From contig NC_043010.1 in NCBI RefSeq assembly GCF_006345805.1, positions 19,344,001 through 19,408,000 on the forward strand: DNA of 64,000 nucleotides, written 5' to 3'. A program made the translations under genes and the position numbers. Source of the stretch: Octopus sinensis. Lineage: Eukaryota. How positions within the stretch are numbered: the first letter of the stretch is position 1; every line of letters begins with the position of its first letter. Below the pieces are notes generated by a model that ran no database searches, was not told the DNA's origin, and saw only the letters and a program-made list of their open reading frames with translations. This document shows positions 3,330 to 59,082 of this stretch, piece after piece.

Positions 3330-3649
3330 ACAACGGTGTTGATAATAGAGAGAGAAAAGAAAGTAAAAGTTCAAAGGAACGTGAGAGAAATTTGCAGATA
3401 TTGTGTTTATGAAATATAGAGATTAATATCAACGAAAAGAGAAATAAATCAATCTAAGTACTTTATAGCAGAACTTTTGGAATTCACAGGCTTGGTTACT
3501 CTTTGCATGCAGATATCATAAAAAAAGGAAAAGTTGGTAACGGAGATCAAATCACGATATTTTCAACAGAGACAAATTCAGATCGAAACAAAAATTTCTT
3601 GATCACTAATGAGTTTTTAAAAGACGATACCACATGCCTATCACTCCTT

Positions 3650-4337
3650 GCTTCACTACACATGGAGACAACATGATGAATGGTTTCATTTTGTTGTTGA
3701 CATACACATGTTGGGCAGCTGCCGTTCTTTAATATGTTGGCCTGGTAGTTTCTTGTAGGTAGGCATTGATCTTGGGCTGCTATGATAAACCCTTCTGTTT
3801 CTGATTTTAAGCCAGAAGCCACAAACCATTGATGGGTACGGGGTTTGTCAGCATTGGCATTATTAGCTCTCTTTGGGTATTTGCCATTGAGAGTTTTTTT
3901 TTGCCATTTATCAGTAAGAATATCTAAGGCAACAGTTTTAGCATGGGTTTTCATGCGCTTAGCTTTTCCTGTGCTTGTTTCTAGTACGTCCAATTTTGGA
4001 AATTGCTGTATTTAGAATTCACTTAGATACTCCTTTGCCTGTTTTGTTACTGAGTATGATGCTTTCTTGTTTTCATGCTTTGAGACAAGTCTTAACATCC
4101 AGTCATCAGAGTTTTTTAGATAGGTGTCTAGACTCACTGTGGCAATCTTCATTGTTAATTCCAATAGTAAAAGTCCATGGCCTCTCTCTTTTCTTGGCAG
4201 ATAAAGTCGTTCTATATCTGTCTTAGGGTGGTGCATTCTATACATTGTCAACAATTTTGGTATCTTTCTGTCAAGATTACATATTTCAGTAATTGACCAG
4301 TTAATGATATTGAAACTGTAAGTCACCACTGGTATGG
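3650..4337 (-). mobile_element. R4/Dong-clade LINE fragment (post-RT region + CCHC finger)
   Basis: VTYSFNIINW...DIERLYLPRKERGHGL and LKSETEGFIIAAQDQCLPTRNY...ETIHHVVSMC; frameshifted; 5' truncation abuts (ATT)n at 4338. Confidence 0.85.
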
Positions 4338-4340
4338 TTA

Positions 4341-4420
<80 letters not shown>

Positions 4421-14433: not shown

Positions 14434-14990
<557 letters not shown>

Positions 14991-15390
14991 ATACAATCTC
15001 TTGTTGTATGTTAGTTTTTCTCTCTATATTATTTATAATTTCACGCTTTTCTTCCGCTGCCTAATGCATATTTTATGTTAATGTGTGGGCGGGGATAAGT
15101 CATTTAAAGTAACCGCCTACTTTGTGATTTTTGAGTGTCTCTTTTTTACACAACTTTGTATGAGTTTGTGTTTGTACGTATATCTGAGTGCGTTGTACGT
15201 ATGTGCAACTATATATATGTGTAATTCTGTGTCTGTATGTATGCGTTGCGTGTCTCGTGTGTGTATGTGTGTGTGCGTCAATGTATCGTATGCATGTATG
15301 TGTGAGTGTATCCGTGTTGTGTTGTGCATGCACATAAATCTTCCCTTTTTTCCTCTTTTTTTAAAATTTATATTTTACTTGTTACGGTGA

Positions 15391-15590
15391 TTAAACTGCG
15401 GCCATTCTGGGGCACCACCATGAAGAATTTCTAGTAGTATAAATCGACCCCAGTACTTATTTTTTTAAAGCCAGGTGCTTATTCTTTCGGACTCTTAAGC
15501 CGAACCGCTAAGTTACAGGGATGTAAACACACCAACAACGGCTGTCAGTCGGTTGGAGGGCACAAACATAGACACTAAGACACACGCACA
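15391..15590 (-). mobile_element. SINE family A 3' fragment (diverged)
   Basis: ctgcggccattctggggcaccacc...gccgaaccgctaagttacagggatgtaaacacacc matches 9191-9350. Confidence 0.75.
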
Positions 15591-15783: not shown

Positions 15784-17332
<1,549 letters not shown>

Positions 17333-22802: not shown

Positions 22803-24071
22803 GTTGTCAAGTACGAAATTTGTAGAAAAGACAAAAGTTTGCTAATGTTTTATAAATACAAGGAACAGTTTTATTCATCAAAGTATGCACCCACATTGTC
22901 AATACACCTTCGCCACTTCAGCGGTAGCTTGTCCAGCCCGGAACAATAAAAGTTTGGCAATTTAGAGTCAATAAAATCTGGGAAGGCTTGTTTTACAGCA
23001 TCGTCGGAATTAAATTTTTTTCCTATCAAAAAGTTATCCAAATTCTGGAAGAAGTGGTAGGCAGTGGGGGCAAGATCAGATGAGTATGGTGGATGATAGA
23101 GAGCTTCTAACTCCAACGCCTGTAGTTTCGCCAATGTCATTTTTGCGATGTGTGGTCTGGTGTTGTCTTGCAATAAAATAGGAGTGGATCTGTTGATGAA
23201 TCTAGGCTGGTTTTTCTTTTGTAAGTTTCTGCATCATTTGGTCCAGTTGGTTACAGTATCCTTCGGCCGTGATTGATGAGCCAGGTTTAATGAAATCATA
23301 ATGGATTACACCTGCGCCAGACCACCAAACACACACCATCAGCTTCTTTTGATGAATTTTGCTTTTTGGACTGTGTTTTGCTGTCTTGTCTTTGTCCAAC
23401 TCTTGTAATGAACGTTTACGGTTGTTTTAATGGGTCCTTTTCTCATCACATGTTACAATTCGATTCAAAAATGATTAATTTTTGTGACGAGAAAGTAGCA
23501 TAATGCAGGCTTCCAAACGTTGCTGTTTCTGATTTTCATTGAGTTCGTGTGGAACCCACTTATCAAACTTTTTCACTTTACCGATTTGAACTAGGTGAGT
23601 CAATATTATTTGCTTGTTAACACCAAACAGCAACGATAATTCACGGGCACTTTGAGATGGCTTTCAGTTCATCATTAACCACCTTTGTTTTTTGGTCGGC
23701 TGCGTTGCTCATTTGTGAGGTCAAATTTACCAGAACGAAATTTTGCAAACCAAATTGATACTGTTTGCTGTATAATAACATTAGAATTAGATACTCCATT
23801 AATATTCCGAGCTGTCTGTGATGCTGTATTTCCAAGAAAGAACTCATATTTCAAAACTGTACGAATTACCGACTTATCCCACTCCAAACAAAAATAGCAA
23901 AAAACGATTTATAAATACTTTATTAAGTGCATAATGAGTTACAATAAAGAAATGGATGTGTCAGCTTTCTAACAAAAAATAAAGATTGTCGAAATATAAT
24001 AATGGCGCAAAATGAGCAGCTGTCAAAGTTTACCACATACCCTACTACAACTTTCATAATTGATGACCTAA
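22799..24071 (-). mobile_element. Full-length (1273 bp) decayed mariner transposon, cecropia/Hsmar1-like
   Basis: TA TSDs; TIRs ttaggttgtcaagtacgaaatttgtag vs ttaggtcatcaattatgaaagttgtag; transposase 23887-22871 frameshifted with IVTCDEK, MVCVWW, QDNTRPH, YSSDLAPTAYHFF (third catalytic D lost). Confidence 0.92.
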
Positions 24072-34619: not shown

Positions 34620-35228
34620 CATCTCTTTGTCTGTCTGTCTCATCCTCCTCTCTCTCTCTCACTCACTCTCTCTCTCTCCATCTTTTTGTCTGTTTGTCTG
34701 TGAGCTGCTCATCCACTCTCTCCATTTCTCAGTCTGTCTGTCTGCCTCTCACCCTGTCTCTCTTTCTCGCTCTCTCTCTATCTCTCCCCATCTCTCTCTA
34801 TCTCGCCTTTCCTCAACCAGTCCTCACTTTCTCTCTCTTTCTCCCCTTCTGTTTCTGTCTGTCTCTCTTTCTTTTTCAAGCTCTCTCTCTCTATCTATCT
34901 GTCTGACTGTCTGTCTTTATCTCTTCCCACCCCTCTCTCATTATCTCTTTCGCTTCCAGCCTTTGGTACCTATTTGTAGTTAAGTCCACTGTGCCTTCCT
35001 AAGTCCACTGTGCCTTCCTAAGTCCACTGTGCCTTCCTATTTGTTTTCATCTCGATCGAGGACCGTGCCTCCATTATCGTATATACTTCACATCTCATGA
35101 ATTATACTTCAACAAAATACATATTTACAGCCGAACGAACTGTGATTATAGAAGGGACATAATTATAGTTTAATGAACTGTACGTACCATACAATGCATG
35201 TAGGCATTTTACTGTACACGCACACACA

Positions 35229-35282
<54 letters not shown>

Positions 35283-35284
35283 AT

Positions 35285-35420
35285 ATAGTTCAAATCTACA
35301 GAAAACAAAAGACGAAGACAGGTGTAGGAACAACAAGCAAATGTATTAGTTTAACGCTCGGGAAGAATGGAGTAGTACTTCACGTTGCCAGTCTACGCTC
35401 TTCGACAGAAAGGATTAAGA
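35285..35420 (-). mobile_element. PLE-like terminal remnant with degenerate hammerhead-like motif
   Basis: Minus strand ctgtcgaagagcgtag...aacgt...acacctgtcttcgtcttttg; same family as 48290-48430. Confidence 0.5.
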
Positions 35421-35527
35421 ATGGAAAAAATGGAGAGAGAATGGGAAAAACGGAAGGAGAAAAAATGTGCTGAGTTCAACGGTCCAACAATGGAGATGAG
35501 TAGAAAAAAGAAGCTGAATGAAAGGGA

Positions 35528-35563
<36 letters not shown>

Positions 35564-35578
35564 ATAAAAATAATAATG

Positions 35579-35639
<61 letters not shown>

Positions 35640-35880
35640 TAATAATAACGGTAACAGTGACCCCCCCCCCAACGAACTAAGGTGCGCAAAATTATGTTGA
35701 TCTGGAAGTTGTCATTGTTGTTGTTTAACTCAAAGTCAGCTCTGACTGAGCAGATTTATGATAAAAAATATTCCAGGCAAGATAGTCCCATTTTTTGCAC
35801 ATCTAGAACACCATTCTTTAATGTGTCCCCTTTTTAAAGACAGCAAATATACACATACATACATATGTGTATGTGTGTGT

Positions 35881-35916
<36 letters not shown>

Positions 35917-36020
35917 TTATGCAGCTGAGGATTGCTCTGCATTTAAATTCATATAATGGTTGCATTGTTTCAATAAATGGAGTCGCTTGAAACGTTATCC
36001 TGTTGCTTATTTTGACTTTC

Positions 36021-36054
<34 letters not shown>

Positions 36055-36140
36055 GTATGTATGATTCAAAATGTGACCGCGTGTGTATCGTTGGCGATTT
36101 TTCCCCCGTCTTCCCTTCCTTGGATCTTTCCTTTTCCTAT

Positions 36141-36175
36141 GTTTCTGACGAAGAGCTCTGCTCGAAACGTTAAAT
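36141..36175 (+). ncRNA. Minimal type I hammerhead motif in a PLE-like remnant (approx. 36070-36265)
   Basis: GUUU-CUGACGA-A-GAGC(ucu)GCUC-GAAA-C-GUU-AAAU; palindromic AACGUU stem III. Confidence 0.55.
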
Positions 36176-36261
36176 CCTCCTTCTTTCCTGAGCGTCCAAT
36201 AATACTATACTTGTTCCACGTCCTCGCGTTGTAGTGTTTTCCTTTTTTTTCATGTTTGGAT

Positions 36262-36345
<84 letters not shown>

Positions 36346-37640
36346 CTGTAGGTTAGATAAAATATGTTGACATATTTTAACTCCTAAAGCAAAATTCACT
36401 GCAGACAGCGAAAAGAAAAATTCTCTGTTATGGTAATAGGTGTAAAAACAGTATAATCTTCCCAATGCTTGCCTCTAGCGGATTCCAAGATGGACGTTTG
36501 TTGCTCCTTAACCTTTCTCAGTGGGAAATACCGAAGAGAGATGACCCTGGGTAAATTCAAGCCATAGTTGAAATAAAAAAACAGTTCTCAGATATATGTG
36601 TGTACGTGTGTGTGCGTTCGTGCGTACGTGAGTGTGTGTGTGAGTGTGTGTGAGTATATGCGTGCGTGTGTAAATGTTAACCTAGAATCTTCGCTGGTAA
36701 GAATAAAGTCCCCAAAATGACAAAAGGGAGTTGCTTTGGTCCAATAGTAGAACATTTGTAATATTTACAAAAAGTGAGTTCTAGTCCCATTTGCAGCCTT
36801 CTGCTTTTTTATTTTATTTTAATTCAAAGCGTTTTTAACCCAGCATTTAGGCGCTATCATTTATAGCTTTATCTGCTTCAAGTTCCACCGTCTCCCAACA
36901 GAATTATTTCACGTGTTCTAGAAGCTTCCAAATTCTTATGACGTAAACAGCATATAATACTCATTGGTAAAAATAAAGTTTTTCAAATGGTCGGTGAAAG
37001 TACGAGGAAAGACAAATTCAACCAGGGATCGAACTTTCATTGCTGTATTAGATGACGTGTTCTGTCTACCACATATAAGTATAATAGCATATTACAGCGT
37101 GAAACAAGCTTTTGTTCTTTTGATTAAAATAGTTATAACTGTATTTGTTGTTGCCGTTGTTGTTGTTGTTGTAAGTATAGAGAGGTGATAAAATGGTATG
37201 GAGTTTTCTATTGCTTCCAATAAACATGGCTGACGATAATTATTGCTGCATCATAAATCATCTGTGTGTCGCACATGCGTAGGTAGTCGTATTGTTTCCG
37301 GCATTATACACATCAAACCGGAAATTCATGGATTCACCTTTAGCTAGACGTGTGTGTGTATGAGTGTGCGGGAAGGAGTGTAACTGTAAAAGTGTGCCGG
37401 AATGCCTACATATAAATATGTATGTACGTATGTATGTATGTATGTATGTATGTATGTATGTATGTATTATGTATGTATGTATGTATGTATGTATGTATTT
37501 ATGTATGTATGTATGTATGTATGTGTGTGAGCATGTGTATATGTGTTAGTCTATGTGTGTTAGGGAATATCCGAGTATGTTTGTGAGTTATTAGTATAGA
37601 GTTGTGTAAATGTACCTGCATGGGTTGGAGGTAATTGTGT

Positions 37641-39835: not shown

Positions 39836-40070
39836 GGGCGGCGAGATGGCAGAATCGTTAGCACGCCGGGCGAAATGCTCAGCGGTATTTTGGCTGCCGC
39901 TGCGTTCTGAGTTCAAATTCCGCCGAGGTCGACTTTGCCTTTCATCCTTTCGGGGTCCATTAAATAAGTACCAGTTACGCACTGGTGTCGATATAATCGA
40001 CTTAATCCCTTTGCCTGTCCTTGTTTGTCCCCTCTGTGTTTAGCCCCTTGAGGGTAGTAAAGAAATAGGT
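39836..40070 (+). mobile_element. SINE family B
   Basis: Full head, core and tail. Confidence 0.9.
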
Positions 40071-42246: not shown

Positions 42247-42266
42247 GAGCAGCCATTGATTACATG
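42247..42266 (+). CDS. HDC: HDC 20-nt microexon (G-AAIDYM)
   Basis: tttcacag|gagcagccattgattacatg|gtaagt; supplies exactly the missing residues and restores phase 1-0 between the flanking exons. Confidence 0.92.
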
Positions 42267-42460
42267 GTAAGTAGAACTTGTTCTTGCTTCATTTAGTCTT
42301 AAAATCTGACCATTACGAGTGTCATGGTTGTCTGCGTGATCTTTCTTTATCAGAAATGTTCAGTGTCTTGTCCTCCAGTTTAAATTAGTTCGATATAGAT
42401 GTCATCAGGTTAACTACTTGTAATTAAGTAGGTGACAGTTATATCGAATTGTGTATTGGT

Positions 42461-42720
42461 TAGTGGTTCTCAGCGGGGGTTGATATGGACCTAGGGGGCT
42501 CCATATAAAATTTTGTTGTTAAAATTTATCTGCAATAAAATACCTATACTTCTCCAATACACAAAATATTTTAATTTTGTAATTCGTAATAACATTTAAT
42601 TTTTAAAATATGATTTTTTAAACTTCAAATTTAAACATCATATGTTTCTCAGATAGACCCTCATGGTCTATCTGACTAAAATAGGGATCGATGGGTCTAT
42701 AGGCAAAAAATAAATGGTTG
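42461..42720 (+). mobile_element. Possible hAT MITE fragment
   Basis: tagtggttctcagcggggg start resembles a CAGTGGTTCTCAA TIR; right end incomplete (aaatggttg). Confidence 0.35.
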
Positions 42721-43175
42721 GTCGATGTACTCTGGACGGGTCGGCCATGGCAATGAGATTGAAAAAGAATGAGAGGAGGTGATAGGGCGTGTTGCCGACG
42801 AGTATGACACAGGTTACAGAAAACAACCGTTGGCTGAGATAATCGGCTACTCTGTCTGTCTGAATCCCTCCAAACTGATCTTTTATGGGATTCGGTTGGC
42901 TCCTGTGACTAGTTGCTATGGAGCCGCTCTGGTTGGCCAGGTTTTAGCTTACTTTGTCCAATGCAAAGATCCGAGGCGAAATTGTTGGATCTATCCATCC
43001 TTTTTTCTGCAAATTCATTCGAGAAATGAATTCAGCGAATTGAATGAAATGTTGCCAATTTTAGACTGGAATTGTTATTGGAATAGTTGATAAGTATGGA
43101 TGCAGATTTGACTGCCTTTAAAGACAGAAACAAACTATGGAAACTTTGCGATGCCAAAATCACTAAAAGTGTAAA

Positions 43176-43364
43176 GTAATCAGAATCTTGGGGTTAGTAG
43201 CCCGCGCTCTTAACCACTACGCCATATACCCACGGTCATATGGCGTAGTGGTTAAGAGCGCGGGTTACTAACCCCAAGATTCTGAGTTCGATTCCAAGCA
43301 GTGACCTGAACAATAACAACAACAGCAACACAACAACAACAACAACAACAACAACACTAATAAC

Positions 43365-43425
<61 letters not shown>

Positions 43426-43607
43426 TCGAAAAATACCTTAGGAATGAGAACCCAGGTTCGAAATTTCCTTAAGACACCTGAAGAAGGCTGGAGGGAATAT
43501 CAGCCGAAACGTTGTGGGAACAACAAACAAGATGAAGACAAATATCCGTCAAATGGAAATAATGTAAATAATGTACCTAATTCCTCATTCTCTTAAATAT
43601 AGAACTG
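43176..43607 (+). mobile_element. tRNA-headed SINE-like element with internal (AAC)(AAT)n tract, hammerhead motif and inverted 5' duplication
   Basis: A box TGGCGTAGTGG (43241), B box GTTCGATTC (43286); 47-bp inverted repeat 43181-43227 / 43238-43284; CTGAAGA-A-GGCTG..CAGCC-GAAA-C-GTT at 43478-43513; candidate TSD aaagtgtaaa at 43166-43175 and 43608-43617. Confidence 0.75.
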
Positions 43608-45501
43608 AAAGTGTAAACATGTAAAACTAAGTGAATAAAATAATATTGCAAAATTCTTGTTCTTTTTGGGTACCTCTTCGTGTATGACATCCATAGAAAA
43701 AGATATCATTTCACTCGCCGCCGTCCTGATTGTCACCATCTATATCATTCATTGATATTTCATACACATTCGCATTTGATAGGATAGTTTCAAAAAACTA
43801 AAATATTTATTATTGCAATTGAATAGAAAAGGATAAATATGTTTTGTTTCAGCGATCCCCAGTTAGGACTTTTCGAAAAATTTATCATAATTTCCAAGAT
43901 AATTCACTTATGAAGAAAATTTTAATTCTCTATATTATTTTAATTCCTAAGACACCTGGCAAAGCCAAAAAATATGAATAAAAAGATTTGGCAGTTAATG
44001 GGTTAAAATATCTCCACAGACTTCGGTGCTAAAACAGGTGTAAATTGCTCAATCAGTTATTAACTGTTGAATGTCCCCTTCCCATTGTCCTTTTAATTGG
44101 GTGACATTGGTTGGAGAATGGAGAGTGGGGTCAGTCGACTAAACTGACCCCAGTCTATCTCATTTGTCCCTTTATGATCTCATCCGCAATCCACTATAGC
44201 CGTGGTTATACCTGGTTCCGTTCCATCACTAACAGGAAGAGAGAAAAAGCTGCTCTTCGTTCGGACGTCAATCTATCACAACGGATAAACTTGGTTGCGA
44301 AAAGAAATTAAACCAAGCTGTGTAAAATTAACGAAGGCACTAATTGCAGAAGTGAATTACAGTGAACTACTACAGTATCACGTGATAGGCGGAGTGACAA
44401 TGTGTATGGATATCTCTCAGTGCAGGCGACAAGACACGACTTCTTGCCTTGTTGACTAGTTATCTTCTACTCTAACAACGCTTTCACCCCAGTATATACC
44501 CAGTTCGTATTTTATCAAGAGCTGTTGGTACCTAAATAGGGTCAATTGATTTAATTCAGGAATTCAACTTGTGTTGCAGTGAATAACATTCTTCTTGTTG
44601 AATGTTTCACTCTTTTCAGAAATATTTATTCCTCATATTGGTTGTAGGAGGACATTTTGACACAAGGTTATTCAGAGTTAGATAGAACTAGCGTAGTATT
44701 GTTGATTTAATATATGACTCTTACTGTTTTAGCTATCACGACCATATTTAAACACAGCACATAAAGAGATACTTCAAGGCATTTAGTCCAACAACACTTT
44801 ACCATTTCTCCTACCTACCGTCTTTTCGAATCTCATTGAAGAAAAGTTCTTAGCTACATTATACATTAAAAAGGTACACTGCAGCTTAAATTGAACGTGT
44901 CTCTTTTAATACTGACATGTTCCAACATGTTGACTTAACTTCATTCTAGCTTCAGAGAAAACAATAATGAAGAAGAAATGAACGTATCAGAAGAAATGAA
45001 AGAAAGAACGGAGAAAACGACGTAAAGAACCGCAAACAAAGCAAAATCTGCATTATTGTTTTGTGAAAAAAAAATCCTTTTTTCCTGTTGAAAGACAGAT
45101 AACGATAAGAAAGAAGGTTCGCCATTTGCAATAGAGATAAGCAGAATGGCGACATTAGCAACCGATGCAACATTTACAAGAATATATCGAGTCGTACAAC
45201 GTCCTTTACAAACTATAAATTCCCAGTCGGAAGGAAAGTATTATAGCTTTAATTTTCAGACAATTGAAAAGCGGAAATGTAAATAAGAACAGAGAAATGT
45301 CATAAATAATTTTCTCCGATACCAGTTGTGAATATCAACGAAGCCACCGCTAGCTTGTCGTTAGGTTCTTTCTGCTTCTCTTTTTTTTTTCCTCTCCGTC
45401 TTTTACCCAACCAACCAGCATTTGATGAGTTCACTCATACAATACGGTGCTACTTAATAAAAATGAGGTAAAGTTTGTTTCCATTCTTACTTAGAATGAC
45501 G

Positions 45502-45559
<58 letters not shown>

Positions 45560-45786
45560 ATACTTCTGCTGATGCTGCTGTTACTGCTGTTGCTGCTGCC
45601 ATCACTACTATTATCGCTACTACTGTTGGTACTGCAAATGATAATAATGATGATGATGATTTTTGTTATTTGCCCTCAGGATGAAGGATGAAGAGGACAT
45701 TACAAAGACAGACGTCAAGTGTTGGGGCTTATATATAATGAAATTATAAATATATATATATATACACACACACACACACCACAACA

Positions 45787-45819
<33 letters not shown>

Positions 45820-45889
45820 CATACATACTACACACATATATATAATATATATAATATATATATATACACACAACACACACATACACACA

Positions 45890-45922
<33 letters not shown>

Positions 45923-45939
45923 ATACTACATACATACAC

Positions 45940-45976
<37 letters not shown>

Positions 45977-45986
45977 ATATAATATA

Positions 45987-47429
45987 TCAGGTCATGCCAT
46001 AAGTTCTGTCCGAATTTTGAATAAAGAAAACAAGTGATCAAATTTCGTTTTTGGATTTGGTTTGCAAGATTCTTTATGTGAGTTCGTGTATTGTTGCATA
46101 TTCTCTTGTGTCTGGGGAGAGTCATTTTCTTTTTGTGCCTTATAATTTAACACTCACTGGTAAAATTTTCACTTTTTTCTTAATTTTATTTTCCTGGAAT
46201 TTTCGTTGCGTCTTGCAACCTTTTCAGTAGTCTTGACTCAGAGTCAAGATTATTGAATTATAAGGCACAAAAAGAAAATGACTCTCCCCAGACACAACAG
46301 AAGTGATCAAATGTTATATTTAATTGAAATTTAATCATCAATGTACTTTTCCTGATTATCTATGAATTCCTTCCATCTATTTGCAAGCTTTTTAATCCCA
46401 TCATTGTAAAACTCTTTTGGTTTCAAAGCGAAGAACTCTGAAATGTTAGGTAGATGTAAGGTAGATGAGGAATTTCTTTCCAACCAAGCTCTTCGATCTT
46501 CTGTGGTGTGATCTTTGCAGAGTGGGGTCGCGCATTTTCCTGATGAAACATCACTCTTTTTCGATTCGCTAAAGCGGGTCTTTTTTTTCTTCAAAGCTTG
46601 GTTCAAACGCTCTAATTGCTGACAGTAGACTTGATCATTGATTGTTGCATCAGGTGGTAACAATTCAAAATGAATTACTCTTTGCAATCCCACCAGATAG
46701 GAAGAAGAACCTTTTTCCCATGAAGTTCCCTTCTTTGTTGTGGTTGAGCTCTTTTCCTTAACATTTCGATAGAAGATCCATTTTTCCTCACCAGTCACAA
46801 GTCTATCCAAAAAAGGGTGAAATGAGTTCGCGAAAATGGAAAGGAGAGCAGATGTCAACTTGGGATTTGCGGTTGCTTTCGGACATTTCATGAGGCACCC
46901 ATTTTCCAAGTTTAGGAACCTCTCCAAGTTGTCGAGATGACGATGAACAGTTGTATGGTTTGAACTAAGCTTTATTGCCGATTCTTCAACTGATAATGCG
47001 GGATTTTCTTCAAGGATTGCCTCAAGGAGCTTATCATCGAACTCAACTGGACGTCCTGTTCGATCTTTATCTTCAAGGCTGAAATCTCCACTTCTGAATT
47101 TTGCAAGCCATTTTCTGCAAGTTCTTTCATTCAAGCAATCTTTCTCATAAACTGAGTGTATGTTTCGAGTCGCTTCGCCTGCAGAGTTTCGTTTTTTGTA
47201 CTCATAAAGCATTATGTGCCTTAAATACTCCTTGGATACTTCCATGTTAGAAAGGGTTTTAATCAAAGAAATTTTAATTCTATTATTCTGTAAAATAATA
47301 TTTAATCAGTTTAAATGTACACAAATGCATATAAATAATTTCTAATTCCATTAGACATTCTAAAACACTATTGAATTTCATTCAATTTTAAAAAAGGTAA
47401 AATCGGAATGAACTTATGGGATGACATGA
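45987..47429 (-). mobile_element. Decayed mariner transposon with internal insertion and deletions
   Basis: TA TSDs; TIRs tcaggtcatgccataagttctgtccga vs tcatgtcatcccataagttcattccga; MEVSKEYLRHIMLYEY..., WVPHEM, TGEEKW, QENARPH; YSPDL motif missing. Confidence 0.9.
46044..46300 (-). mobile_element. PLE-like insertion inside the mariner
   Basis: 12-bp duplication aagtgatcaaat at 46032-46043 and 46301-46312; perfect 42-bp inverted repeat 46106-46147 / 46256-46297. Confidence 0.6.
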
Positions 47430-47440
47430 TATATATAAGG

Positions 47441-47730
47441 TCTGAAGGCGTGTGGTTTAGGGGTTAGGGTATTTGGCTTGCGATCGTAGGGTCGTGAGTT
47501 CGATTCCCGGCAGCGCGTTGTGTCCTTCAGCTTGCAAAAATGAGTAGTACCTGTATTTCAAAGGGTCAGCCTTGTCACACTCTGTGTCACGCTGAATCTC
47601 CCTCAGAAGTATGTGAAGGGGTACGTGTGTCTGTGGAGGGCTCAGCCACTTTTGCATTAATCTCATGCGCAAGCTGTTCCGTTGATTGGATCAACTGGAA
47701 CCCTCATCGTCGTAAGCGACGGAGTGCCAG
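47441..47730 (+). mobile_element. tRNA-derived SINE (family D)
   Basis: 10-bp TSD atatataagg at 47431-47440 and 47731-47740; gagttcgattccc B box; body shared with 2815-3135. Confidence 0.85.
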
Positions 47731-48289
47731 ATATATAAGGGTAAGATCCGAGGATCCAAGTGTAGGAAGCTAGTAAGCTTCAAGCAGTCTGTGGCAGGCA
47801 TAGAAAACAAAATACGGATTGTGTCGAAGATTATGCACTTTTTCCCATATCGAAGTTACGAAGAAATTCGGTTAGCTGAAGATTTCTGTATAGCTCAGAG
47901 TTAGCAACTCGAGTTGCTACGAATGCGAATAAAAATTCTAATTGAGGGAGTAGAAGAGGTAGAATTCAGGCCTCATGTGTTTCCTAGCTAGCTGATACTC
48001 TCATGTAACAATTACTCAATCAGGGGTACTCAGCTAGCTGCTCATTAGGCAGGAAGATACCTTAATTATATAAAGGTCGCATTGTCTTTTGGGAATCCCA
48101 AGTCAACACATGATTAATGTATCCTCGGCCCGATGAGAAGCTGCGACTCTTGGTTGAGTAATTATTACATCAGAGGGTTTGTCAGCAAAGAAACATATGT
48201 CAACTCTTCTTTTCTTTTTCTTTTTTTTTTTTCTCCTTTCTTTTTTCTTACGGGTCACCATGCTTGACTGCTGAATCCACAAGTTTCTG

Positions 48290-48430
48290 TTTTTTACTCT
48301 CTCTCTGTTTATTTTCTTTTGTTCCTCTCTGTTGAGGAGCTTAGGCTCGAAACGTAAAAGACTTTTTCACTTTCCCGAGCGTCAAACTAATACACCTGTC
48401 TTCGTCTTTTGTTTTTTTGTAAATTCTAAC
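48290..48430 (+). mobile_element. PLE-like terminal remnant with variant hammerhead-like motif
   Basis: ctgttga-g-GAGC(ttag)GCTC-GAAA-CGTA at 48329-48356; ends aattctaac followed by (TA)n. Confidence 0.5.
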
Positions 48431-48449
48431 TATATATATATATATATAT

Positions 48450-48503
<54 letters not shown>

Positions 48504-48614
48504 AGTTTTGTCAGTGAACAGGTCGCGGTTTGAAAGCGACAAAAATATTTTGACACAAATTAAATTGAAATGTTGAAGTGAATCTAACGGGCTTTTTTCT
48601 CTTTTGTGTGTGTG

Positions 48615-48685
<71 letters not shown>

Positions 48686-48789
48686 GTACAGAGTATACAA
48701 TAAAACTAAAAAGGGAGCATACACCGTACAGAATAGTAAAAAAAAGTGCGAGCATGATAGTGATGATGTCCTCTTGCTAAAGGAGGGCC

Positions 48790-49070
48790 TGTAGGCATAA
48801 TCGAAAAACCTCTCCTTCCAAGACTTCCCTTAACACCAAGGGCAAGTGCCCTTTCCAATCTCTGTTCCCCGACTCATAAAGGCGAGCAGCCCTAACGGAC
48901 CGAGCGCGCGACGCGAAACGTTTCCTATAGGTGGCCGTTTACTTTGACCACCGAGCAGGTGCCGTTGTGCATTGCAGGCATCAAAGTGCTTAAAGGGAGT
49001 CCGAAATCGACTGCTTTCAGGACGGTTTCCAGGTAGCGATGTGCGACTATAGTGGTCTTGAAGGAGGGCA
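48790..49070 (-). mobile_element. Tx1/L1-clade RT fragment
   Basis: HRYLETVLKAVDFG...SVVKVNGHL*ETFRVARSVR*GCSPL (VRQGCPL motif with stops). Confidence 0.75.
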
Positions 49071-49555
49071 ATGTGTGTGTGTGTGCTTGTTTGTGTGTGT
49101 GGGGGGGTGTAATGAATATAGTGACGTATGTACGTTTTTAAAATCTGTGAAGCCACTGTACTTAGTCCAGCCGAACTCCCTTTAATAACGCATAGTGTTT
49201 AAAAACACAACATAACTCAAAGCTAAGTGAAACGAAATCAAGCTGGAAGTGGAAGAATGTGACAGATATCGATATTTCACGGCCACTTCCACTCTCAAAA
49301 CCATTCACAGATCCACCTCCGAAACGGCTTGCCGCGGCCGAATAGAGGTTTGTATACAAATAGTGTAAATACTTTTTGCCAGTGTATAAATCGAATTTAT
49401 ACACATACATACATACATACATACATACATACATACATACATACATACATACATACATACACACATACATTCATACATACACACATACGTAAATACATAA
49501 ATGTGTGTGTGAGTGTGTGTGAGTGTGTGTTGTGTGTGTGTGTGTGTATGTGTGT

Positions 49556-49587
<32 letters not shown>

Positions 49588-49846
49588 TAGTCCTTTTGTC
49601 CAAAGTAAGCCAATAAAATTTCATATTCCTGATGAATTGTTAAATATCAATAAAAAAAGAAGTTCGATCCCTATTGCAAGCTTATGAAGAAAGCTGTCGT
49701 GGGACTAATTTTACAATAAGATCAAATGTTAGATATGGATATGAGTCGTGTGTTTATATCTATCCACCCAACTCCCTTATATGTGATAAACTATATCAAC
49801 TAAAGCAATATCTATTTATATTTATGATATAGTCGTTCATCTTTAT

Positions 49847-49883
<37 letters not shown>

Positions 49884-50205
49884 CGTCTATCTTTCTTTCT
49901 CTTTTGTGTGTGTGGCCAGAAGAGCAATACAACAGTAGATGTACTACTATACGTCGTCTGCTTTCTCCATTCTGCTTCAGCTATAACGCAATGCAACACA
50001 TTGTTGCTATATAAAGTGGCATTCTGCTGACCGCTGTCCGCTTGAATTACCCCCACGGATTTAACTGACCATGTTGTTTAAGCAATCAAATCTGAAATTG
50101 CTGTCACCTCGCTATAAATTTCACAACACTCAGATTTTCCAATTTACCTTTTCAATCAATTAACCCAGAACTACACTTCCGGTAAAATTCGCACAACCAC
50201 GAAGG

Positions 50206-50247
<42 letters not shown>

Positions 50248-50272
50248 CATATATATATATATATATATATAC

Positions 50273-50307
<35 letters not shown>

Positions 50308-50450
50308 AGTATATATATATACATATATATTATACATATATATATATATAATATATATTATATATCCATATATATACATATATATATACATACATATATA
50401 TAATATAATACATATATAATATATATATACCTATATATACATATATATAC

Positions 50451-50482
<32 letters not shown>

Positions 50483-50518
50483 TATTATATGTATGTATAT
50501 ATATATATATATATATAT

Positions 50519-50555
<37 letters not shown>

Positions 50556-51114
50556 ACATATATATATATATACATATATACACATATATATATATTTTGT
50601 GTGTGTTGTGCGCGCGTGTAATTTTTATCTAATATACTTCTGGTAGATTTCGTTGAGTCTCTTTTACTTGTTGTAGACTTTTGTAACTGTCAAAATTCTG
50701 CAATATATTCTCACTGTTATAATTAAAGTCAATGTAAGGACCTCCGCTTGTCGTTTTTGTGGTGAGCGGGGACTTAGAAACCAACAAATATTTTGATCGA
50801 CAAATTTGCGGTAATTCAGTTTAATTTTCTGCATTATTGGGGGGGGGGGCTTATGAATTGCCAGTGACTTTCTGGCTGTCAAAGTAGTCTCAATCTTCTG
50901 GTTTATATTTTGTGTTGATGAAAATTTCAGCTGATTTATTTCTTTTCTTTTTATTTTAAATTTTCAATATATATATATATATATATATATTCTTTTGGTT
51001 TTGTCCGCAGCTGTCTGCGTGTTCTAATTGATGTAGAATTAACTTAGCTTCTTTTCATTTCTTCGGGATTGGTGATAATTGTAAATGAATTCAATAAGTT
51101 TGTCTGAGTGTTTA

Positions 51115-51262
51115 AGAAGTTCGCTTTGCACAGATAAGCTTTAGGTTCAATCTACCTGTGTTGCACCTTTGGCAAATAACTTCTATCAATATCATAACCT
51201 CAGGTCAAGAAAAGCCGCATGAGCAAAATTGGGTCAAAAGAAACTATATGGAAGCCCGGTGC
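51115..51262 (+). mobile_element. Old SINE family A head
   Basis: gtttaagaagttcgctttgc...ggttcaatc...gcacctttggcaa...ggaagcccg. Confidence 0.5.
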
Positions 51263-51830
51263 AGAGATTGTTCTTTGTTTTTAGTGAGCTTAATCAATCA
51301 CCTGGTTTAACACCTTTAGCTAGCCAACTTAGAAGTGTCACCTCTGCTGCAAATACTCTGACAAGACACGCAGTCAAAAGATAATTTACTTCCTCCCTCT
51401 CTTCCTGCCAACAGCGACGTAAATCCTTTAAAAGTTCAGGGCCACTGACCTTCTTCTTCTGACAGAGCCAATGAGATAGAAAACGTTCCTCATCGATTCA
51501 GTGAGGTTGTAACATTCATGTCTTTTCCAAAAGTATTACTGGAGTAAAAGGAACAGATACTCAATGAAGCTGTTTATTGTTTATCTCCTACAGCAACCAG
51601 TTATGTACTGGGGCCCATTCAGGAGAGTCTTCTTCACTGGAGATGTGTTACTGATTGGCAACAAGGAAGTCGAGGTGGGGGCGGGTCTCTGCCGGAGACA
51701 GCAGGAATATATAAAAGGGAGAAATTCCTGAGAGAGAAGAACGTGACAAAACCGGATGTAAGACAGAGAGACAGACAGACAGACAGGCAGGCAGGCAGGC
51801 AGACAGACAGACAGACAGACATATAGATAG

Positions 51831-51870
<40 letters not shown>

Positions 51871-51947
51871 GGTTTATTAAAACTCGAGTCGCATTCGTTC
51901 GACTCAATTCAATATTCGTGTGTGTAAGCATGTTTATGTGTGTACGG

Positions 51948-52021
<74 letters not shown>

Positions 52022-52795
52022 GTGTGTAATATTTTAGCAGCAATTTTATACACAGCAGTAATAAAACGTCATTTGTTACACAAAATGAGAAGATAAAATT
52101 TGGATTTAGACAGGAACACAAGGAAAACGGCTGGAAATGGTTAGCATTTAACAAAAATCAACATAAAAAATGTGTTGTAAAAGGAAAGAGAATATAAATA
52201 TGGTTTCTTGTTTAAATGTCAAATGTTGTATGAATGCGTTCATAAAAATTATTTGAATGATATTCCTTGAGTGTCAAATGTTAGTTCTTTTGAAAGAAAA
52301 CCACATGTGGCGCAAGTAGATAATGACATTGATGGAAAGGGAAAAAAATGTCAAACTTCCTTTTTTCCAGGAAGATGTCGATCATAATGGTTGTTAACGG
52401 ATTGTGAGATTTTTAATAGATTCTTCTTCTAAGTCTACAGAAACACATAAATACTTATTTACACATTTGTTGCCAATTGACCCTCAACCTAGTCCTAAGC
52501 CAATTCCGGCGCATGTTGAACTCACAGCAAAATAGAGTATGGTAGAAATCTGTACTATAACGGAGAAAGCTGTTTATTAATTAGTTATGATTGTGTAACT
52601 TTTTACTAACAGAAAGTGATTATTAACGTCTGCACTGTGTAGAAAACTCGTTAAAAATTTAACTTTAACCTTTTTTTAATTAAAATGTGTTTTTTTTTTA
52701 AAAAAAGCTCCTATTATTCAAGATTTCAACTGCGTGATTCAATTCTAATTCATTGCGAGAATTTGAATTGAATTTTAACTTCTTACTCCCTTCAC

Positions 52796-52837
<42 letters not shown>

Positions 52838-52856
52838 CTATCTATCTATCTATCGA

Positions 52857-52897
<41 letters not shown>

Positions 52898-52993
52898 TTC
52901 AGTATATATTCACGTGTGTGCGTGAGTGTGTATACCGTTTGGCATTATGATGTTATACATGATGCTCGATATTTTTGTATATTCTTCTTGTTT

Positions 52994-53095
<102 letters not shown>

Positions 53096-53121
53096 AACGT
53101 AGGTATAATTCAAATACTTTT

Positions 53122-53208
53122 ACTTCCGACACATGTTTCGAAGATTTCACTGATATTATTCAAAAGTATAAATGGTGTAAAGCAATGTAATCTTCTCTTC
53201 AGGGAAGT
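53122..53208 (-). ncRNA. Canonical type I hammerhead ribozyme, antisense to HDC
   Basis: ACUUCC-CUGAAGA-GAAGAUU[41 nt]AAUCUUC-GAAA-C[AUGU]G-UC|GGAAGU: 6-bp stem I, 7-bp stem II with G10.1-C11.1, GUC cleavage triplet. Confidence 0.8.
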
Positions 53209-53264
53209 GAAGAAATGAAACTCGTCAATAAGACATTCTAACAGAAATGTATATCTATTTCCAG

Positions 53265-53363
53265 CATTGGCAAATTCCTCTCAGCAAAAGGTTTCGAGCC
53301 CTAAAATTATGGTTCGTCATCCGATCCTTCGGCGTGGAAGGTCTTCAGAAACACATACGTCAC
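53265..53363 (+). CDS. HDC: HDC exon (99 nt, [33 protein letters not shown])
   Basis: ttccag|...|gtgagt; phase 0-0; HWQIPL.RF..LKLWFV motif. Confidence 0.97.
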
Positions 53364-53689
53364 GTGAGTCGATCGTTTATTTTTATTCCTTGATATTGTC
53401 GTTGCTGTTGTTGTTGTTGCTTTTAAAACTTCTTGATGATAAGAGATTAGAAGCCATGAAATATTACACTGGTTTCTTATGTCACCTAAGCGATCCAGTT
53501 ACTTGACTCACAAAACATCCAAAGGGCTGATTGCTTAATACTGGTATCCAAAGCGTTAAGAAGATGAGAGATACGAATCTCCTGGATGAGTCGATAGAGG
53601 AAAAGATGATTTAAATTAAAATTACTCACTTCGACCGCTGATTTGTTTTTTATTTTTATTTTTTTACCATAATAACTATGAGATCAATT

Positions 53690-53930
53690 TAATAAGTAAG
53701 CTACCGTCTCGAACCTTGGGACTTGTAAGGTCAGTGGCCCGGTTTCTATGGCGTATTTGGGACCGGGACCATAATGTTGCTTCTACACGACTCCATCGCA
53801 AGGGTACTCGTTGACAGCTGAGTAGACTGAGGATTAAAGTGTTTATCGAGGAGTGAAGTGTTTTGCTGAAGAACACAACGCACAGCTCGATCGAGAGATT
53901 ATCATAACCTAAGTAAGAAACGAAGCCGCC
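53690..53930 (-). mobile_element. Diverged SINE fragment
   Basis: cagctgagtagactg and gctgaagaacacaacgca words typical of the SINE bodies here. Confidence 0.4.
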
Positions 53931-54196
53931 GGATGATGTCCCACAAACGACCATCTCTCTTGACTTTCAAATTACAGCCGCTCTTTTTGGCAACTTCCAA
54001 TAAAATCTCAACAAATGTTGCCAATGTCTCTCTCCTACACAGAACAATTCCTCAGGTTGGCACCACAAAATGCTTTACTGTTCATAAAGTTTCTAAAAGT
54101 GTTGCCTACACTCAACAAAACTCTTCTCATCTCCATCACACCTTCTTCCCCTCCACCATCACTGCTGCCACTAACACCACCACCAGCAATAACAGT

Positions 54197-54575
54197 GGAG
54201 GCGCAATGGCCCAATGGTTAGGGCAGCGGACTCGCGGTCGGAGGATCGCGGTTTCGATTCCCAGACTGGGCGTTGTGAGTGTTTATTGACCGAAAACACC
54301 TAAAGCTGCACGAGGCTCCCGCAGGGGGGTGGGGGTGGCGACCTCTGTTGTACTCTTTCACTCCAACTTTCTCTCACTACTTTCTTCCTGTTTCTTGTCC
54401 CCGACTTCCTACGCAACCGCTGAGCCTGGATGCACATTCATCCATCCGTCGATGCTCTTGGTGTCAGGGGTTGACCTGCTTTCTCTTCTGCAGGTCTTAC
54501 GAATATAGCAAAGGACCACGTTCCGGACTTCTCCTACTGCGAGCTCTGGGACGAAGACCGTTCGCTCAACAGCAA
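54197..54575 (+). mobile_element. tRNA-derived SINE, family C
   Basis: Same head as 28393 but a different 3' body. Confidence 0.85.
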
Positions 54576-55633: not shown

Positions 55634-55813
55634 TATTTCTTTATTGCCCACAGGGGGATAAACATAGAGGGGACAAATAAGGAGAAACAAAGGGACTAAT
55701 TCGATTACATGGACACAAGTGCTCAACTGGTACTTATTTAATCGACCCCGAAAGGATGAAAGGCAAAGTCGACCTCGACGGAATTTGAACTCAGAACGTA
55801 ACGACAGACGAAA
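55634..55813 (-). mobile_element. SINE family B (5'-truncated)
   Basis: Core and tail match; begins about 37 nt after the HDC donor at 55597. Confidence 0.85.
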
Positions 55814-55921
55814 TTCGCTTTCATTGTATACACGTGTTTTTGTGTTAAGCCCCACTTGTTTCTTGTTTTCTATTGGTCTTTTTTTCTTTTCTGTTCGGCC
55901 CTTGTGGCCAATAAAGAAAAG

Positions 55922-56530: not shown

Positions 56531-56576
56531 ATCATCATCATCATCCTCCTCCTCATCATCATCATTATTATTATTA

Positions 56577-56777
56577 AAGCGGCGAGCTGGCAAAATCGCA
56601 AAATGCTTAGCGGCATTTCGGCCGTCACTATGTTCTGAGTTCAAATTCCGCCGAGAACAACTTTACCTTTCATCCTTTCAGTGTCGATAAGATAAGTACC
56701 AGTTGAACACTGGGGTCAATGTAATCGGCTCGTCCCCTCCCCCAAAATTACTGCTCTTGTAGCAAAATTTGAAACCA
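56577..56777 (+). mobile_element. SINE family B
   Basis: Head and core match. Confidence 0.85.
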
Positions 56778-56885: not shown

Positions 56886-58793
56886 TTATTATTATTTGCT
56901 TTTAATCTGCCTGTTTGTTACAATCACTCGCCAAGACATACCCAGCGTCGTAGGGCGAGTGAAGGATAAGAAATGTTACAGCACGACTGGAAGCTTGGGG
57001 AGAGGAAGCAGTAGGGGCAATAACAAAATATCTTCATGTAATACGACACCGACATTTAAATTGATAGGATTTTTCTAAAGATGTGGGCAATACTTTTCAG
57101 CACAATCTTTTGGATTTCTCTGAGACATGGTTCTCCTGGGATATTATCTAGATGTTTCTAATATCCCTTTCTTATCATACCTAAGGCACCCACAATAACA
57201 GGAATAGTTCTCGCTTTAAGATGCCACATCTTTTGTATATCAATTTCCAGGTCCTTAAATTAACTTAATTTGTCAAATTCCTTTACAGATATATTTTTAT
57301 CAGCGGGAACATTTACATCTATTAGTCTACAAGTATTTTCTTCTCTATCTTTAATGACTATGTCCGGTCGATTATCCTGGATCGTTCTGTCGGTGTTGAC
57401 TGGAAAATCCCAGAAGACTGACATTTTTACCTTCAACGACTGACTTAGGGTGATGTTCATACCATTAAGCAGGAGTGCTGATTTTGTAGTGTTTACATAT
57501 TTTCCTCTGTAAATACCCGAGGTGAGATGGTCTATTGTTTCATCAAATTCATCTCAGAATCTGCATTTAGGGCCAGAACTGTTTTTGGTAAGCAAGCTTT
57601 GATCTTCTGTCGCCAATAGGAAACCTTCAGTCTCTGATGGGTTGTCGCTTGGTCTACATCAGCATTTCGGCTTTAAAGTATATACTGTCCATACAGAGGT
57701 TTCTGGCCCCACCGCTCCTCAATTTGTTTCTGCCCTTTCTTTTTTGCAGTCTGTTTGATCCGTTTTGCTTGTTTGGTGGCAGTGGTTTCAAGTTCTTCAT
57801 CTAATTCAGGGTTAATGCCATATTCCCTTGCGAATTTGCAAGCTTCCTTGACAATGGAATGTGATTTTTTGCTGCTTTCGTGTTTGCACTCAAGCTGTAG
57901 CATCCAGTCTTCTATATTAAATAAGTACCTGTTCATTGCTATTGTGGTGGTCATATAACACAGTTCTACCTGCATAATTCCTCTTCCCTATATTACTTCT
58001 AGGTAGGTACAGACGATCAAAGTCTGCTTTTGGGTGGTGTATGTTCTTAGATGTTAGTAGTTTTCTTGTCTTCCTATCCAGCATTGGAACTCTGTAAGAT
58101 TCCAGTTAATCATGTTAAAACTATATTGGACGTCTGGAAGTGCCAGGGTGTTAATGGCTTCGATGCAATTTTTAGGGTTGAATTCAGTTTTTAGTATGAG
58201 TCGTATTCTCCTGTGATATTCCTTTCTTATTTTTCCCTTCATAGTAGCGTCATGTATACCGTCTCCTTCGTTTATCCCCAGGTATTTATAGCTTCCTTGT
58301 GGGCCAAGCTTCTTGATGGTAGTGTCGGTATCTAATTTAACGGAAGCTGTTTACCTGAGCTTGTCTCTTACAAAATTTACTTTAGAACACTTATCAAGGC
58401 CCAAATCCATCCTGATGTCATTGCCGAACTCTTTAACGGTTGTTAGCAGTCCCATTAGCTCTTCGTCATTTCTAGCAAACAGCTTCAGTTCGTCCATATA
58501 AAGCAGATGATTTACTGTAATATTATCCATTTTGAACCCATACCTGGTGTTACTCAGTTCGTTTGAGAGTGGGATCAGTGCCATGCAAAAGAGTAATGGG
58601 GAGAGGGAGTCACCTTCAAAGATGCCTCGTTTGATGTTGATGTTGTTAGATTGGCTCATTCCATTACTATTGTATAGAACACTTGGCCAAGCTACCTTGT
58701 AAGAATTTGGAGATAACAAGAGAGATCTTGTATATCGCAAGGGCCTTGAGTAGCCAATTAAGTGGGACACTGTAGTTTCTACAGTCATTTCAT
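56886..58793 (-). mobile_element. 5'-truncated R4/Dong-clade LINE (RT through RLE to 3' tail)
   Basis: IKRGIFEGDSLSPLLFC, HLLYMDELKLFA, YKYLG, RPDIVIKDREENTCRLIDVNVP (PD-D/ExK); (AAT/AAC)n on both sides. Confidence 0.92.
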
Positions 58794-58794
58794 T

Positions 58795-58842
<48 letters not shown>

Positions 58843-58869
58843 ATTGTTATTATTATTATTATTATTATT

Positions 58870-59082
58870 AAGGCGGCGAGCTGGCAGTATCGTTGGCATA
58901 CCGGGCGAAATGCTAAGCGGTATTTCGTCCGTCTCTATGTTTGGAGTTCAAATTCCGCCGAGGTCGACTTTACCTTTCATCCTTTCGTGGGGTTGATGAA
59001 ATAAGTACCAGTTACGCTCTGGGGTTGATGTAACCGACTTAAACCCATCTTACAAGTTGCCCTTGTGGCAAAAATTTGAAAT
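58870..59082 (+). mobile_element. SINE family B
   Basis: Head and core match; (ATT)n upstream and (CAT)(TAT)n downstream. Confidence 0.88.

Follow-up and report, generated by a model that had tools for sequence, protein, structure and literature searches.

A complete type I hammerhead motif antisense to the Octopus sinensis histidine decarboxylase gene, probably a transposon relic

The HDC locus and its intron end

The window, that is, the whole 64,000-nt stretch of Octopus sinensis DNA analysed here, carries a histidine decarboxylase (HDC) gene. An exon at 53265-53363 (+) and other exons match HDC proteins of O. bimaculoides, O. vulgaris and O. sinensis in tblastn searches, and the last HDC exon agrees with the O. 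sinensis protein XP_029644905.2 at two residues that distinguish O. sinensis from O. vulgaris. The exon at 53265-53363 is constitutive and codes for 33 residues. It is preceded by a 10,998-nt intron (42267-53264, +) that starts after a microexon at 42247-42266, and the joined exons translate unbroken into HDC. The microexon, which lay outside the initial tblastn alignment, is 20 nt long, completes a G codon, encodes AAIDYM and has clean CACAG/GTAAGT flanks.

The window also contains the remains of several kinds of mobile elements. Mariner/Mos1-type transposase remnants are located at 46334-47305 (-) and 22874-23908 (-); the first matches HTH_48 and Transposase_1, and the only scanned part of the second (22874-23233) gives a weak DDE_3 match below the curated cut-off. 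LINE-type reverse transcriptase (RT) fragments (RVT_1, zf-RVT) are found in HDC introns and upstream (57263-58947, 16114-17195 and 3550-4341, all on the minus strand), and none of them is of the Penelope type. SINE-like repeats of two kinds, seen in six-frame translations only, occur in several copies (3240-3422 on the minus strand, 54190-54290 on the plus strand, 39900-40040, 55700-55830 and 56560-56690); one such repeat is visibly tRNA-derived, and its translation reads GGAMAQWLGQRTRGRRIAVSIPR.

A hammerhead ribozyme motif is situated on the strand opposite to HDC, 56 nt from the exon at 53265. This position had been given by the initial annotation, and reading the acceptor AG (53263-53264) and the exon that follows it bears this out. 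The same annotation had the ribozyme overlap the likely branch-point region, a claim that is not supported by the intron end. The last 40 nt of the intron (53225-53264, +), which show collinear similarity to the intron end of Argonauta hians, comprise a TTCTAAC motif, a weak pyrimidine tract and the AG. TTCTAAC (53236-53242) is the best branch-point candidate, and its branch A at 53241 lies 23 nt from the AG and 28 nt beyond the ribozyme. Because, by the scanning model of 3' splice-site choice, the AGs at 53231-53232 and 53243-53244 would be picked as acceptors if the branch point were further upstream, the branch point is expected in about 53225-53250. A branch point within the ribozyme, which ends at 53208, thus appears implausible.

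Architecture of the motif and its expected frequency

Positions 53208 to 53122 of the minus strand read ACUUCC-CUGAAGA-GAAGAUU-A-CAUUG-(30 nt)-CAGUG-A-AAUCUUC-GAA-ACAUGUGU-C-GGAAGU. At the level of sequence, this 87-nt stretch is confirmed as a complete type I hammerhead motif, with a full-length alignment to the Rfam model RF00163 and a match to our own descriptor. Every position of the conserved type I core (CUGANGA, GAAA, U-H site, A15.1-U16.1) is occupied as expected, and three helices surround this core, with helix I open-ended (6 bp in helix I, 7+5 bp in helix II, and helix III).

Helix I is formed by six Watson-Crick pairs between its 5' strand ACUUCC (53203-53208, -) and its 3' strand GGAAGU (53122-53127, -). 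The core element C3 to A9, CUGAAGA (C3 U4 G5 A6 A7 G8 A9; 53196-53202, -), fits CUGANGA, and G12 A13 A14 follows at 53137-53139 (-). Between them lies helix II (53140-53195, -), in which seven Watson-Crick pairs (GAAGAUU/AAUCUUC) are separated by an A/A internal loop from five further pairs (CAUUG/CAGUG) that carry a 30-nt distal loop; both the minimum free energy (MFE) and the centroid folds show this helix. The helix III segment ACAUGUGU (53129-53136, -) is self-complementary; it can form 2 bp and a tetraloop in the monomer, or an 8-bp duplex between two copies. The pairs A15.1/U16.1, C15.2/G16.2 and G10.1-C11.1 are all present, and the cleavage site is GUC, so that by hammerhead numbering the predicted cut falls 3' of C17 (53128, -) and before G1.1 (53127, -). 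The initial annotation is upheld on each of these points: an intact set of conserved core nucleotides, a perfect 6-bp stem I, a 7-bp stem II extendable by CAUUG/CAGUG, and a stem III palindrome next to a GUC that places the cut between 53128 and 53127 of the minus strand. Helix II has 12 bp in all and ends in a 30-nt loop, and no clear loop 1 is seen in helix I; the canonical contacts between loop 1 and loop 2, which give fast cleavage at physiological Mg2+, cannot be recognised, though contacts of another kind may exist. The centroid fold contains helices I and II, and the folding energy is unremarkable (MFE z-score of -1.17).

The Rfam model RF00163 (Hammerhead_1) aligns to exactly 53122-53208 (-) over all of its positions (1-45 of 45), with 26.4 bits and E = 6.7e-5 in a search of a 121-nt stretch against all families. 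The type I model search proposed by the initial annotation thus returned the full-length motif, albeit below the RF00163 gathering score of 34. This shortfall arises because the model charges the 52-nt insert in helix II; in all core positions and in the three helices, the motif is like Hammerhead_1. The match was seen only with the short stretch, being absent at the gathering threshold and in a 501-nt search, where microsatellite hairpins alone matched (miRNA models, below cut-offs). The Rfam gathering threshold therefore misses, at this locus, a complete hammerhead with a long helix II. A snR75 match (E = 0.012-0.049) was dismissed as noise, and with it a snoRNA reading.

In its stringent setting (helix I of at least 4, helix II of at least 3), the descriptor has the motif as its sole match in the 64-kb window. 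In 20 Mb of second-order Markov sequence, it gave three matches at this setting (at least 4/3) and none at 5/4 or above. The number of motifs with 6/7 bp expected by chance is about 6e-5 per window when the Markov count is scaled by pairing probability, and about 8e-6 per window when the Rfam E-value is scaled to one family. Overall, chance would provide 1e-5 to 1e-4 such motifs per window, which extrapolates to about 0.3-2.5 per octopus-sized genome. The genome-wide statistics alone thus leave room for a chance match to the hammerhead consensus in an AT-rich intron, a reading also favoured by the score below the Rfam gathering level, the ordinary folding energy and the lack of a paralogue described below. 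Against it stand the low expectation per window and several features that the descriptor did not demand, namely G10.1-C11.1, GUC, the self-complementary helix III and the microsatellite context; this context makes chance unlikely.

Orthologous sites and the extra block

The window was compared with the HDC loci of O. bimaculoides (L002, GCA_001194135.2), of A. hians (L003) and of a more distant cephalopod (L001, ENA ERZ21867824); the O. bimaculoides locus was found via the RefSeq member of the HDC protein cluster. All three keep the HDC exon of the window at 100% amino-acid identity. The introns of O. bimaculoides align at 87-94% on both sides of the site, with window 51889-53032 corresponding to L002 35232-36353 and window 53247-54185 to L002 36342-37248. 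At the site itself, O. bimaculoides reads ...TTGTT(CT)14 C (AT)6 TTCCAG|CATTGG, in an assembly that is gap-free nearby. For about 215 nt of the window there is no equivalent in O. bimaculoides; these take in the greater part of the (TA)n as well as the (GA)n, the tail, the ribozyme and everything that follows up to 53249. No hammerhead was found upstream of the same exon in A. hians (L003 92760-92858), nor upstream of the orthologous exon in L001, where the intron cannot be aligned and a poly-T tract reaches the AG. By this comparison, the motif is lineage-specific, as none of the three relatives has it at the orthologous site. The initial annotation had tied any argument for a host function to conservation of this site, and the comparison turned out negative.

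On the minus strand, the extra block has the order leader, ribozyme, tail, (TC)n and (TA)n. The short leader 5' of the ribozyme (53209-53224, -) has no counterpart in O. bimaculoides, and similarity to A. hians begins only at about 53225; in the scenario favoured below, the leader would be the 5' end of a truncated insert. The unique 29-nt tail 3' of the ribozyme (53093-53121, -), which reads AAAAGTATTTGAATTATACCTACGTTAAT, is likewise missing in O. bimaculoides. This tail ends in ...GTTAAT and is followed by (TC)n and (TA)n, just as the initial annotation had described. The (TC)n run (53060-53092, -), which is (GA)n on the plus strand, is present only in the window (L002 has no (GA)n) and presumably forms the 3' simple-repeat end of the element. 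The (TA)n tract (53019-53059) is the putative target microsatellite and has a shorter equivalent, (AT)6, in O. bimaculoides.

The 157-nt unique block has no paralogue detectable by blastn in the 222 kb of the window, L001, L002 and L003, so that we infer, and do not see, a repeat family. Exact-pattern scans of JGI metagenome contigs and viral contigs gave no match to the motif.

The simple repeats at 52991-53093 form a near-perfect palindrome of about 100 nt, (TC)14(TA)n(GA)n, which gives matches to miRNA models of up to 59 bits, below their gathering scores. It exists because the plus-strand (TC)14, common to the window and O. bimaculoides, meets the element's own (TC)n on the opposite strand. 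One arm of the palindrome thus seems to have pre-existed, and the other seems to have arrived with the insert. No inverted copy of the element was found to the left of the microsatellite, and the palindrome consists of simple repeats only.

Two scenarios may account for the difference between the two Octopus species. In the favoured one, judged about twice as probable as the other, the insert covers only about 53019/53060-53224, the remaining 40 nt or so of the intron (53225-53264) belong to the ancestral sequence, and a later deletion in O. bimaculoides took out all that lay between two TA tracts. In the less favoured one, the entire block 53033-53249 was inserted and O. bimaculoides represents the empty site. 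When repeats and insert are removed, the flanks of the window are collinear with the A. hians intron end (...GGATATTTCTCT|ATAAGCCACAGTTAATAAAGAAAT... in the window versus ...GTATATTCTTCT..|..ATAAGACATTCTAACAGAAAT... in A. hians). This alignment scores 47, a value that 5 of 2000 shuffles and 80 of 2000 randomly chosen stretches of A. hians also attain, and the collinearity gives moderate backing to the favoured scenario. The branch-point region would be ancestral in the favoured scenario and brought by the insert in the other, and the ribozyme is missing from the A. hians and O. bimaculoides sites in both. Since O. bimaculoides may once have had the block and lost it by a deletion between TA tracts, the event can be dated only tentatively.

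In O. bimaculoides (L002 36300-36359, compared with window 53019-53264), the sequence (CT)14 C (AT)6 TTCCAG stands directly at the acceptor, and about 25 nt (TCAATAAGACATTCTAACAGAAATG) that are apparently common to the window and A. hians are missing. A deletion in O. bimaculoides may have taken away the earlier branch-point region, with the (CT)n run staying behind to serve as pyrimidine tract.

Origin of the insert

The motif is quite likely the ribozyme of a short hammerhead-bearing retroelement inserted antisense into the microsatellite of the HDC intron. The parent would be a Penelope-like element with a heavy 5' truncation, or else a short non-autonomous relative, and its integration into the (TC)n(TA)n near the intron end would have taken place in the lineage of this Octopus. 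On this account, the hammerhead is probably a transposon relic of the ordinary kind rather than a device of the host. The motif, its absence from the orthologous sites and the microsatellite context are observed, whereas we infer the element type, the direction of the insertion or deletion and the inactivity of the motif at this locus.

Penelope-like elements have their ribozyme near the 3' end and an optional tail of 30-40 bp, and they target microsatellites such as (TA)n, which hide target-site duplications (PMC8557442, PMC11167929); inverted truncated copies are a Penelope hallmark (PMC8557442). The same layout is found here, with the ribozyme near the 3' end, a 29-nt tail, and an insertion at (TC)n(TA)n. 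Penelope hammerheads (PMC4209133) resemble the motif in being of type I, with a long helix II (7 bp here), G10.1-C11.1 and a self-complementary helix III that suggests action as a dimer, as well as in being mostly solitary or truncated, near the 3' end, with a short tail and microsatellite targets. The known traits of metazoan Penelope/type I hammerheads include G10.1-C11.1, GUC and a self-complementary helix III (PMC4209133). Three of four min-hammerhead traits are present in the motif (a helix II of 6-8 bp, G10.1-C11.1 and the self-complementary helix III), while the fourth, an unpaired base between A9 and 10.1, is absent. The motif further differs from Penelope hammerheads in its helix I, which has 6 bp and not 4-5, and in its helix II, which has an extra 5-bp stem and a 30-nt loop.

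Neither a Penelope RT or GIY-YIG open reading frame (ORF) nor a second flanking repeat was found in the 64-kb window, and Pfam detected no Penelope domain in 20 stop-free segments. However, Cervera and de la Pena (2014, PMC4209133) report that the majority of Penelope hammerheads in genomes stand alone, probably as parts of truncated elements, so that the absence of an ORF is compatible with Penelope membership. The lack of an RT/GIY-YIG remnant, the lack of a paralogue in 222 kb, the missing unpaired base between A9 and 10.1 and the overlong helix II loop all count against the Penelope label, and the specific assignment to Penelope is no more than plausible. The initial annotation had called the motif a probable remnant of a Penelope pLTR. 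Its transposon part is supported by a block missing in three relatives and by the microsatellite layout, whereas the pLTR part finds neither an ORF in the window nor a paralogue in its favour.

Within its parent element, the ribozyme would serve to cleave multimeric or tandem transcripts of the element at GUC, probably as a double hammerhead in which two copies have a common extended helix III. Modelled folding fits such a classical double-hammerhead action: with +0.6 kcal/mol, the 2-bp helix III is unfavourable in the monomer, whereas the cofolded dimer reaches -40.0 kcal/mol versus 2 x -14.8, a gain of about 10, with an 8-bp ACAUGUGU duplex and the helix I strands swapped. Single hammerheads of this build are poor cleavers that do better when dimeric, and cleavage by Penelope min-hammerheads is weak even in the dimer (PMC4209133, PMC7229834). 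Invertebrate retrozyme ribozymes with a 2-bp helix III cleave well but have loop-loop contacts (PMC7229834). At this locus, which has one copy opposite the HDC strand, cleavage would be possible only in an antisense transcript, and inefficiently. Since this single copy is antisense, the HDC pre-mRNA would carry only its inactive complement, which could still form a stable hairpin.

Other hammerhead motifs are found in these loci. At a relaxed setting of the descriptor, the window and L001 have three motifs each and L003 has one, whereas reversed-sequence controls have none and chance would give about 0.006 per window; hammerhead motifs are thus at least 100 times more frequent in these loci than expected by chance. 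All but one are in or adjoining microsatellites, whereas only 11-19% of window positions lie within 35-100 nt of a (TA/TC/GA) run. In the giant squid genome, 235 Hammerhead_1 loci have been reported along with Penelope elements (PMC6962438).

One of the further motifs in the window, at 36141-36175 (+), is min-hammerhead-like (GUUU CUGACGA A GAGC-UCU-GCUC GAAACGUU AAAU). It is part of a 213-nt unit (36053-36265) that has (TA)n on both sides and lies inside a 1.9-kb stretch (34694-36633) missing in O. bimaculoides. A second min-hammerhead-like motif, at 43475-43516 (+), follows an (AAT)n and lies inside a 1.76-kb window-specific block (42720-44475). The repeat that contains it has two inverted paralogues in L002, at 14506-14710 (-) and 14799-15001 (+), which keep the GGCUGG...CAGCCGAAACGUU half but are without CUGANGA. 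Both motifs have no Rfam match and are known from our own descriptor alone.

In L001, a unit of some 150 nt (15390-15545, -) ends with a canonical type I hammerhead at 15439-15396 (-), whose helix III is AC-AGAUCU-GUC. A type III reading of this motif was rejected, as it leaves no helix I hairpin. The unit lies between two (TA)n tracts, and its head resembles a tRNA, with stretches like an A box and a B box and no ARAGORN call. Schistosoma Sm-alpha is a SINE-like, short non-coding retroposon with a type I hammerhead. The L001 unit resembles it in layout, by virtue of the tRNA-like head, whereas the window locus has no such head; the sequences are unrelated. Two further hammerhead-like motifs of L001 (17409-17450 and 17716-17753) adjoin (TA)n.

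The A. hians motif lies in the same gene (L003 42581-42497, -) and is an 85-nt hammerhead built like that of the window, with CUGAAGA, a helix II of 6+5 bp whose distal part measures about 33 nt, and ACACGUGU as helix III. The 586-nt unit around it (42410-42995) has perfect 67-bp inverted ends (42410-42476 and 42929-42995) and lies within TA-rich repeats. A model built on the window motif gives this look-alike 18.2 bits with filters off and does not retrieve it with default filters. Six pairs are changed on both sides between the two motifs, which is no evidence of covariation, because both were picked by a descriptor that demands pairing. What the two have in common is their architecture; common descent is only a possibility.

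A close rival reading takes the insert for a stand-alone unit from a metazoan non-LTR retrozyme, one of the short tandem type I hammerhead repeats that are spread by small circular RNAs, and not for a truncated autonomous Penelope. The insert, at about 165-190 nt, falls within the retrozyme range of 170-400 nt, and helix III has a 2-bp stem and a tetraloop as in invertebrate retrozyme ribozymes (PMC7229834). Metazoan retrozymes are also alike in carrying a type I hammerhead in a short, AT-rich, non-coding unit and in probably depending on Penelope machinery (PMC7229834; 10.64898/2026.07.22.740005). A 2026 preprint describes monomeric retrozyme copies and derives retrozymes from Penelope pLTRs, but the same preprint finds them depleted from introns (10.64898/2026.07.22.740005). 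The L001 unit, a hammerhead-bearing stretch of some 150 nt between (TA)n tracts, also speaks for this reading. However, neither blastn nor the descriptor found a tandem second unit or second hammerhead nearby, so that the head-to-tail arrangement of retrozymes is lacking and a single unit would yield no circular RNA by double cleavage. Helix II, moreover, is not the canonical 4 bp with contacts between loop 1 and loop 2. Although a retrozyme and a truncated Penelope give the same picture when no family consensus is at hand, and are related anyway, we consider a retrozyme unit improbable.

A chance match is less probable still, given that the motif lies inside a block that differs between species and that hammerheads are so strongly enriched in these loci.

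A takeover by the host in the O. sinensis/O. vulgaris lineage is also very hard to credit. In this reading, the ribozyme would end an antisense RNA over the HDC acceptor, or its complement would form a hairpin in the pre-mRNA that tunes use of the acceptor. The core is intact and both main helices are perfectly Watson-Crick, so that the plus-strand complement folds too, and no more than 56 nt lie between the motif and the acceptor of an exon that is both coding and constitutive. Against this, the motif is missing in O. bimaculoides, A. hians and L001, all of which keep the exon at 100% identity, and it is antisense and single-copy, with a weak helix III and the likely branch point outside it. 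The amniote intronic hammerheads HH9 and HH10 are likewise of type I and within introns of protein-coding genes, but those are on the sense strand and deeply conserved, whereas the octopus motif is antisense, lineage-specific (missing in L001, L002 and L003) and without a match to those Rfam families. A host function of the ribozyme is thus not supported.

The hammerhead as a relic of a short retroelement has little meaning for HDC biology, because the ribozyme is on the wrong strand and unconserved, and it is best annotated as transposon-derived. The locus provides a well-defined presence/absence difference between Octopus species, adjoining a constitutive splice acceptor. Short hammerhead elements in the four cephalopod loci are mostly in or adjoining TA-type microsatellites, which fits Penelope-type integration. 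A rather speculative possibility is that octopods have a hammerhead subclass of their own, marked by a bipartite, 12-bp helix II with a distal domain of some 30 nt; this build is seen here and in A. hians, and Rfam thresholds miss it at the O. sinensis locus.
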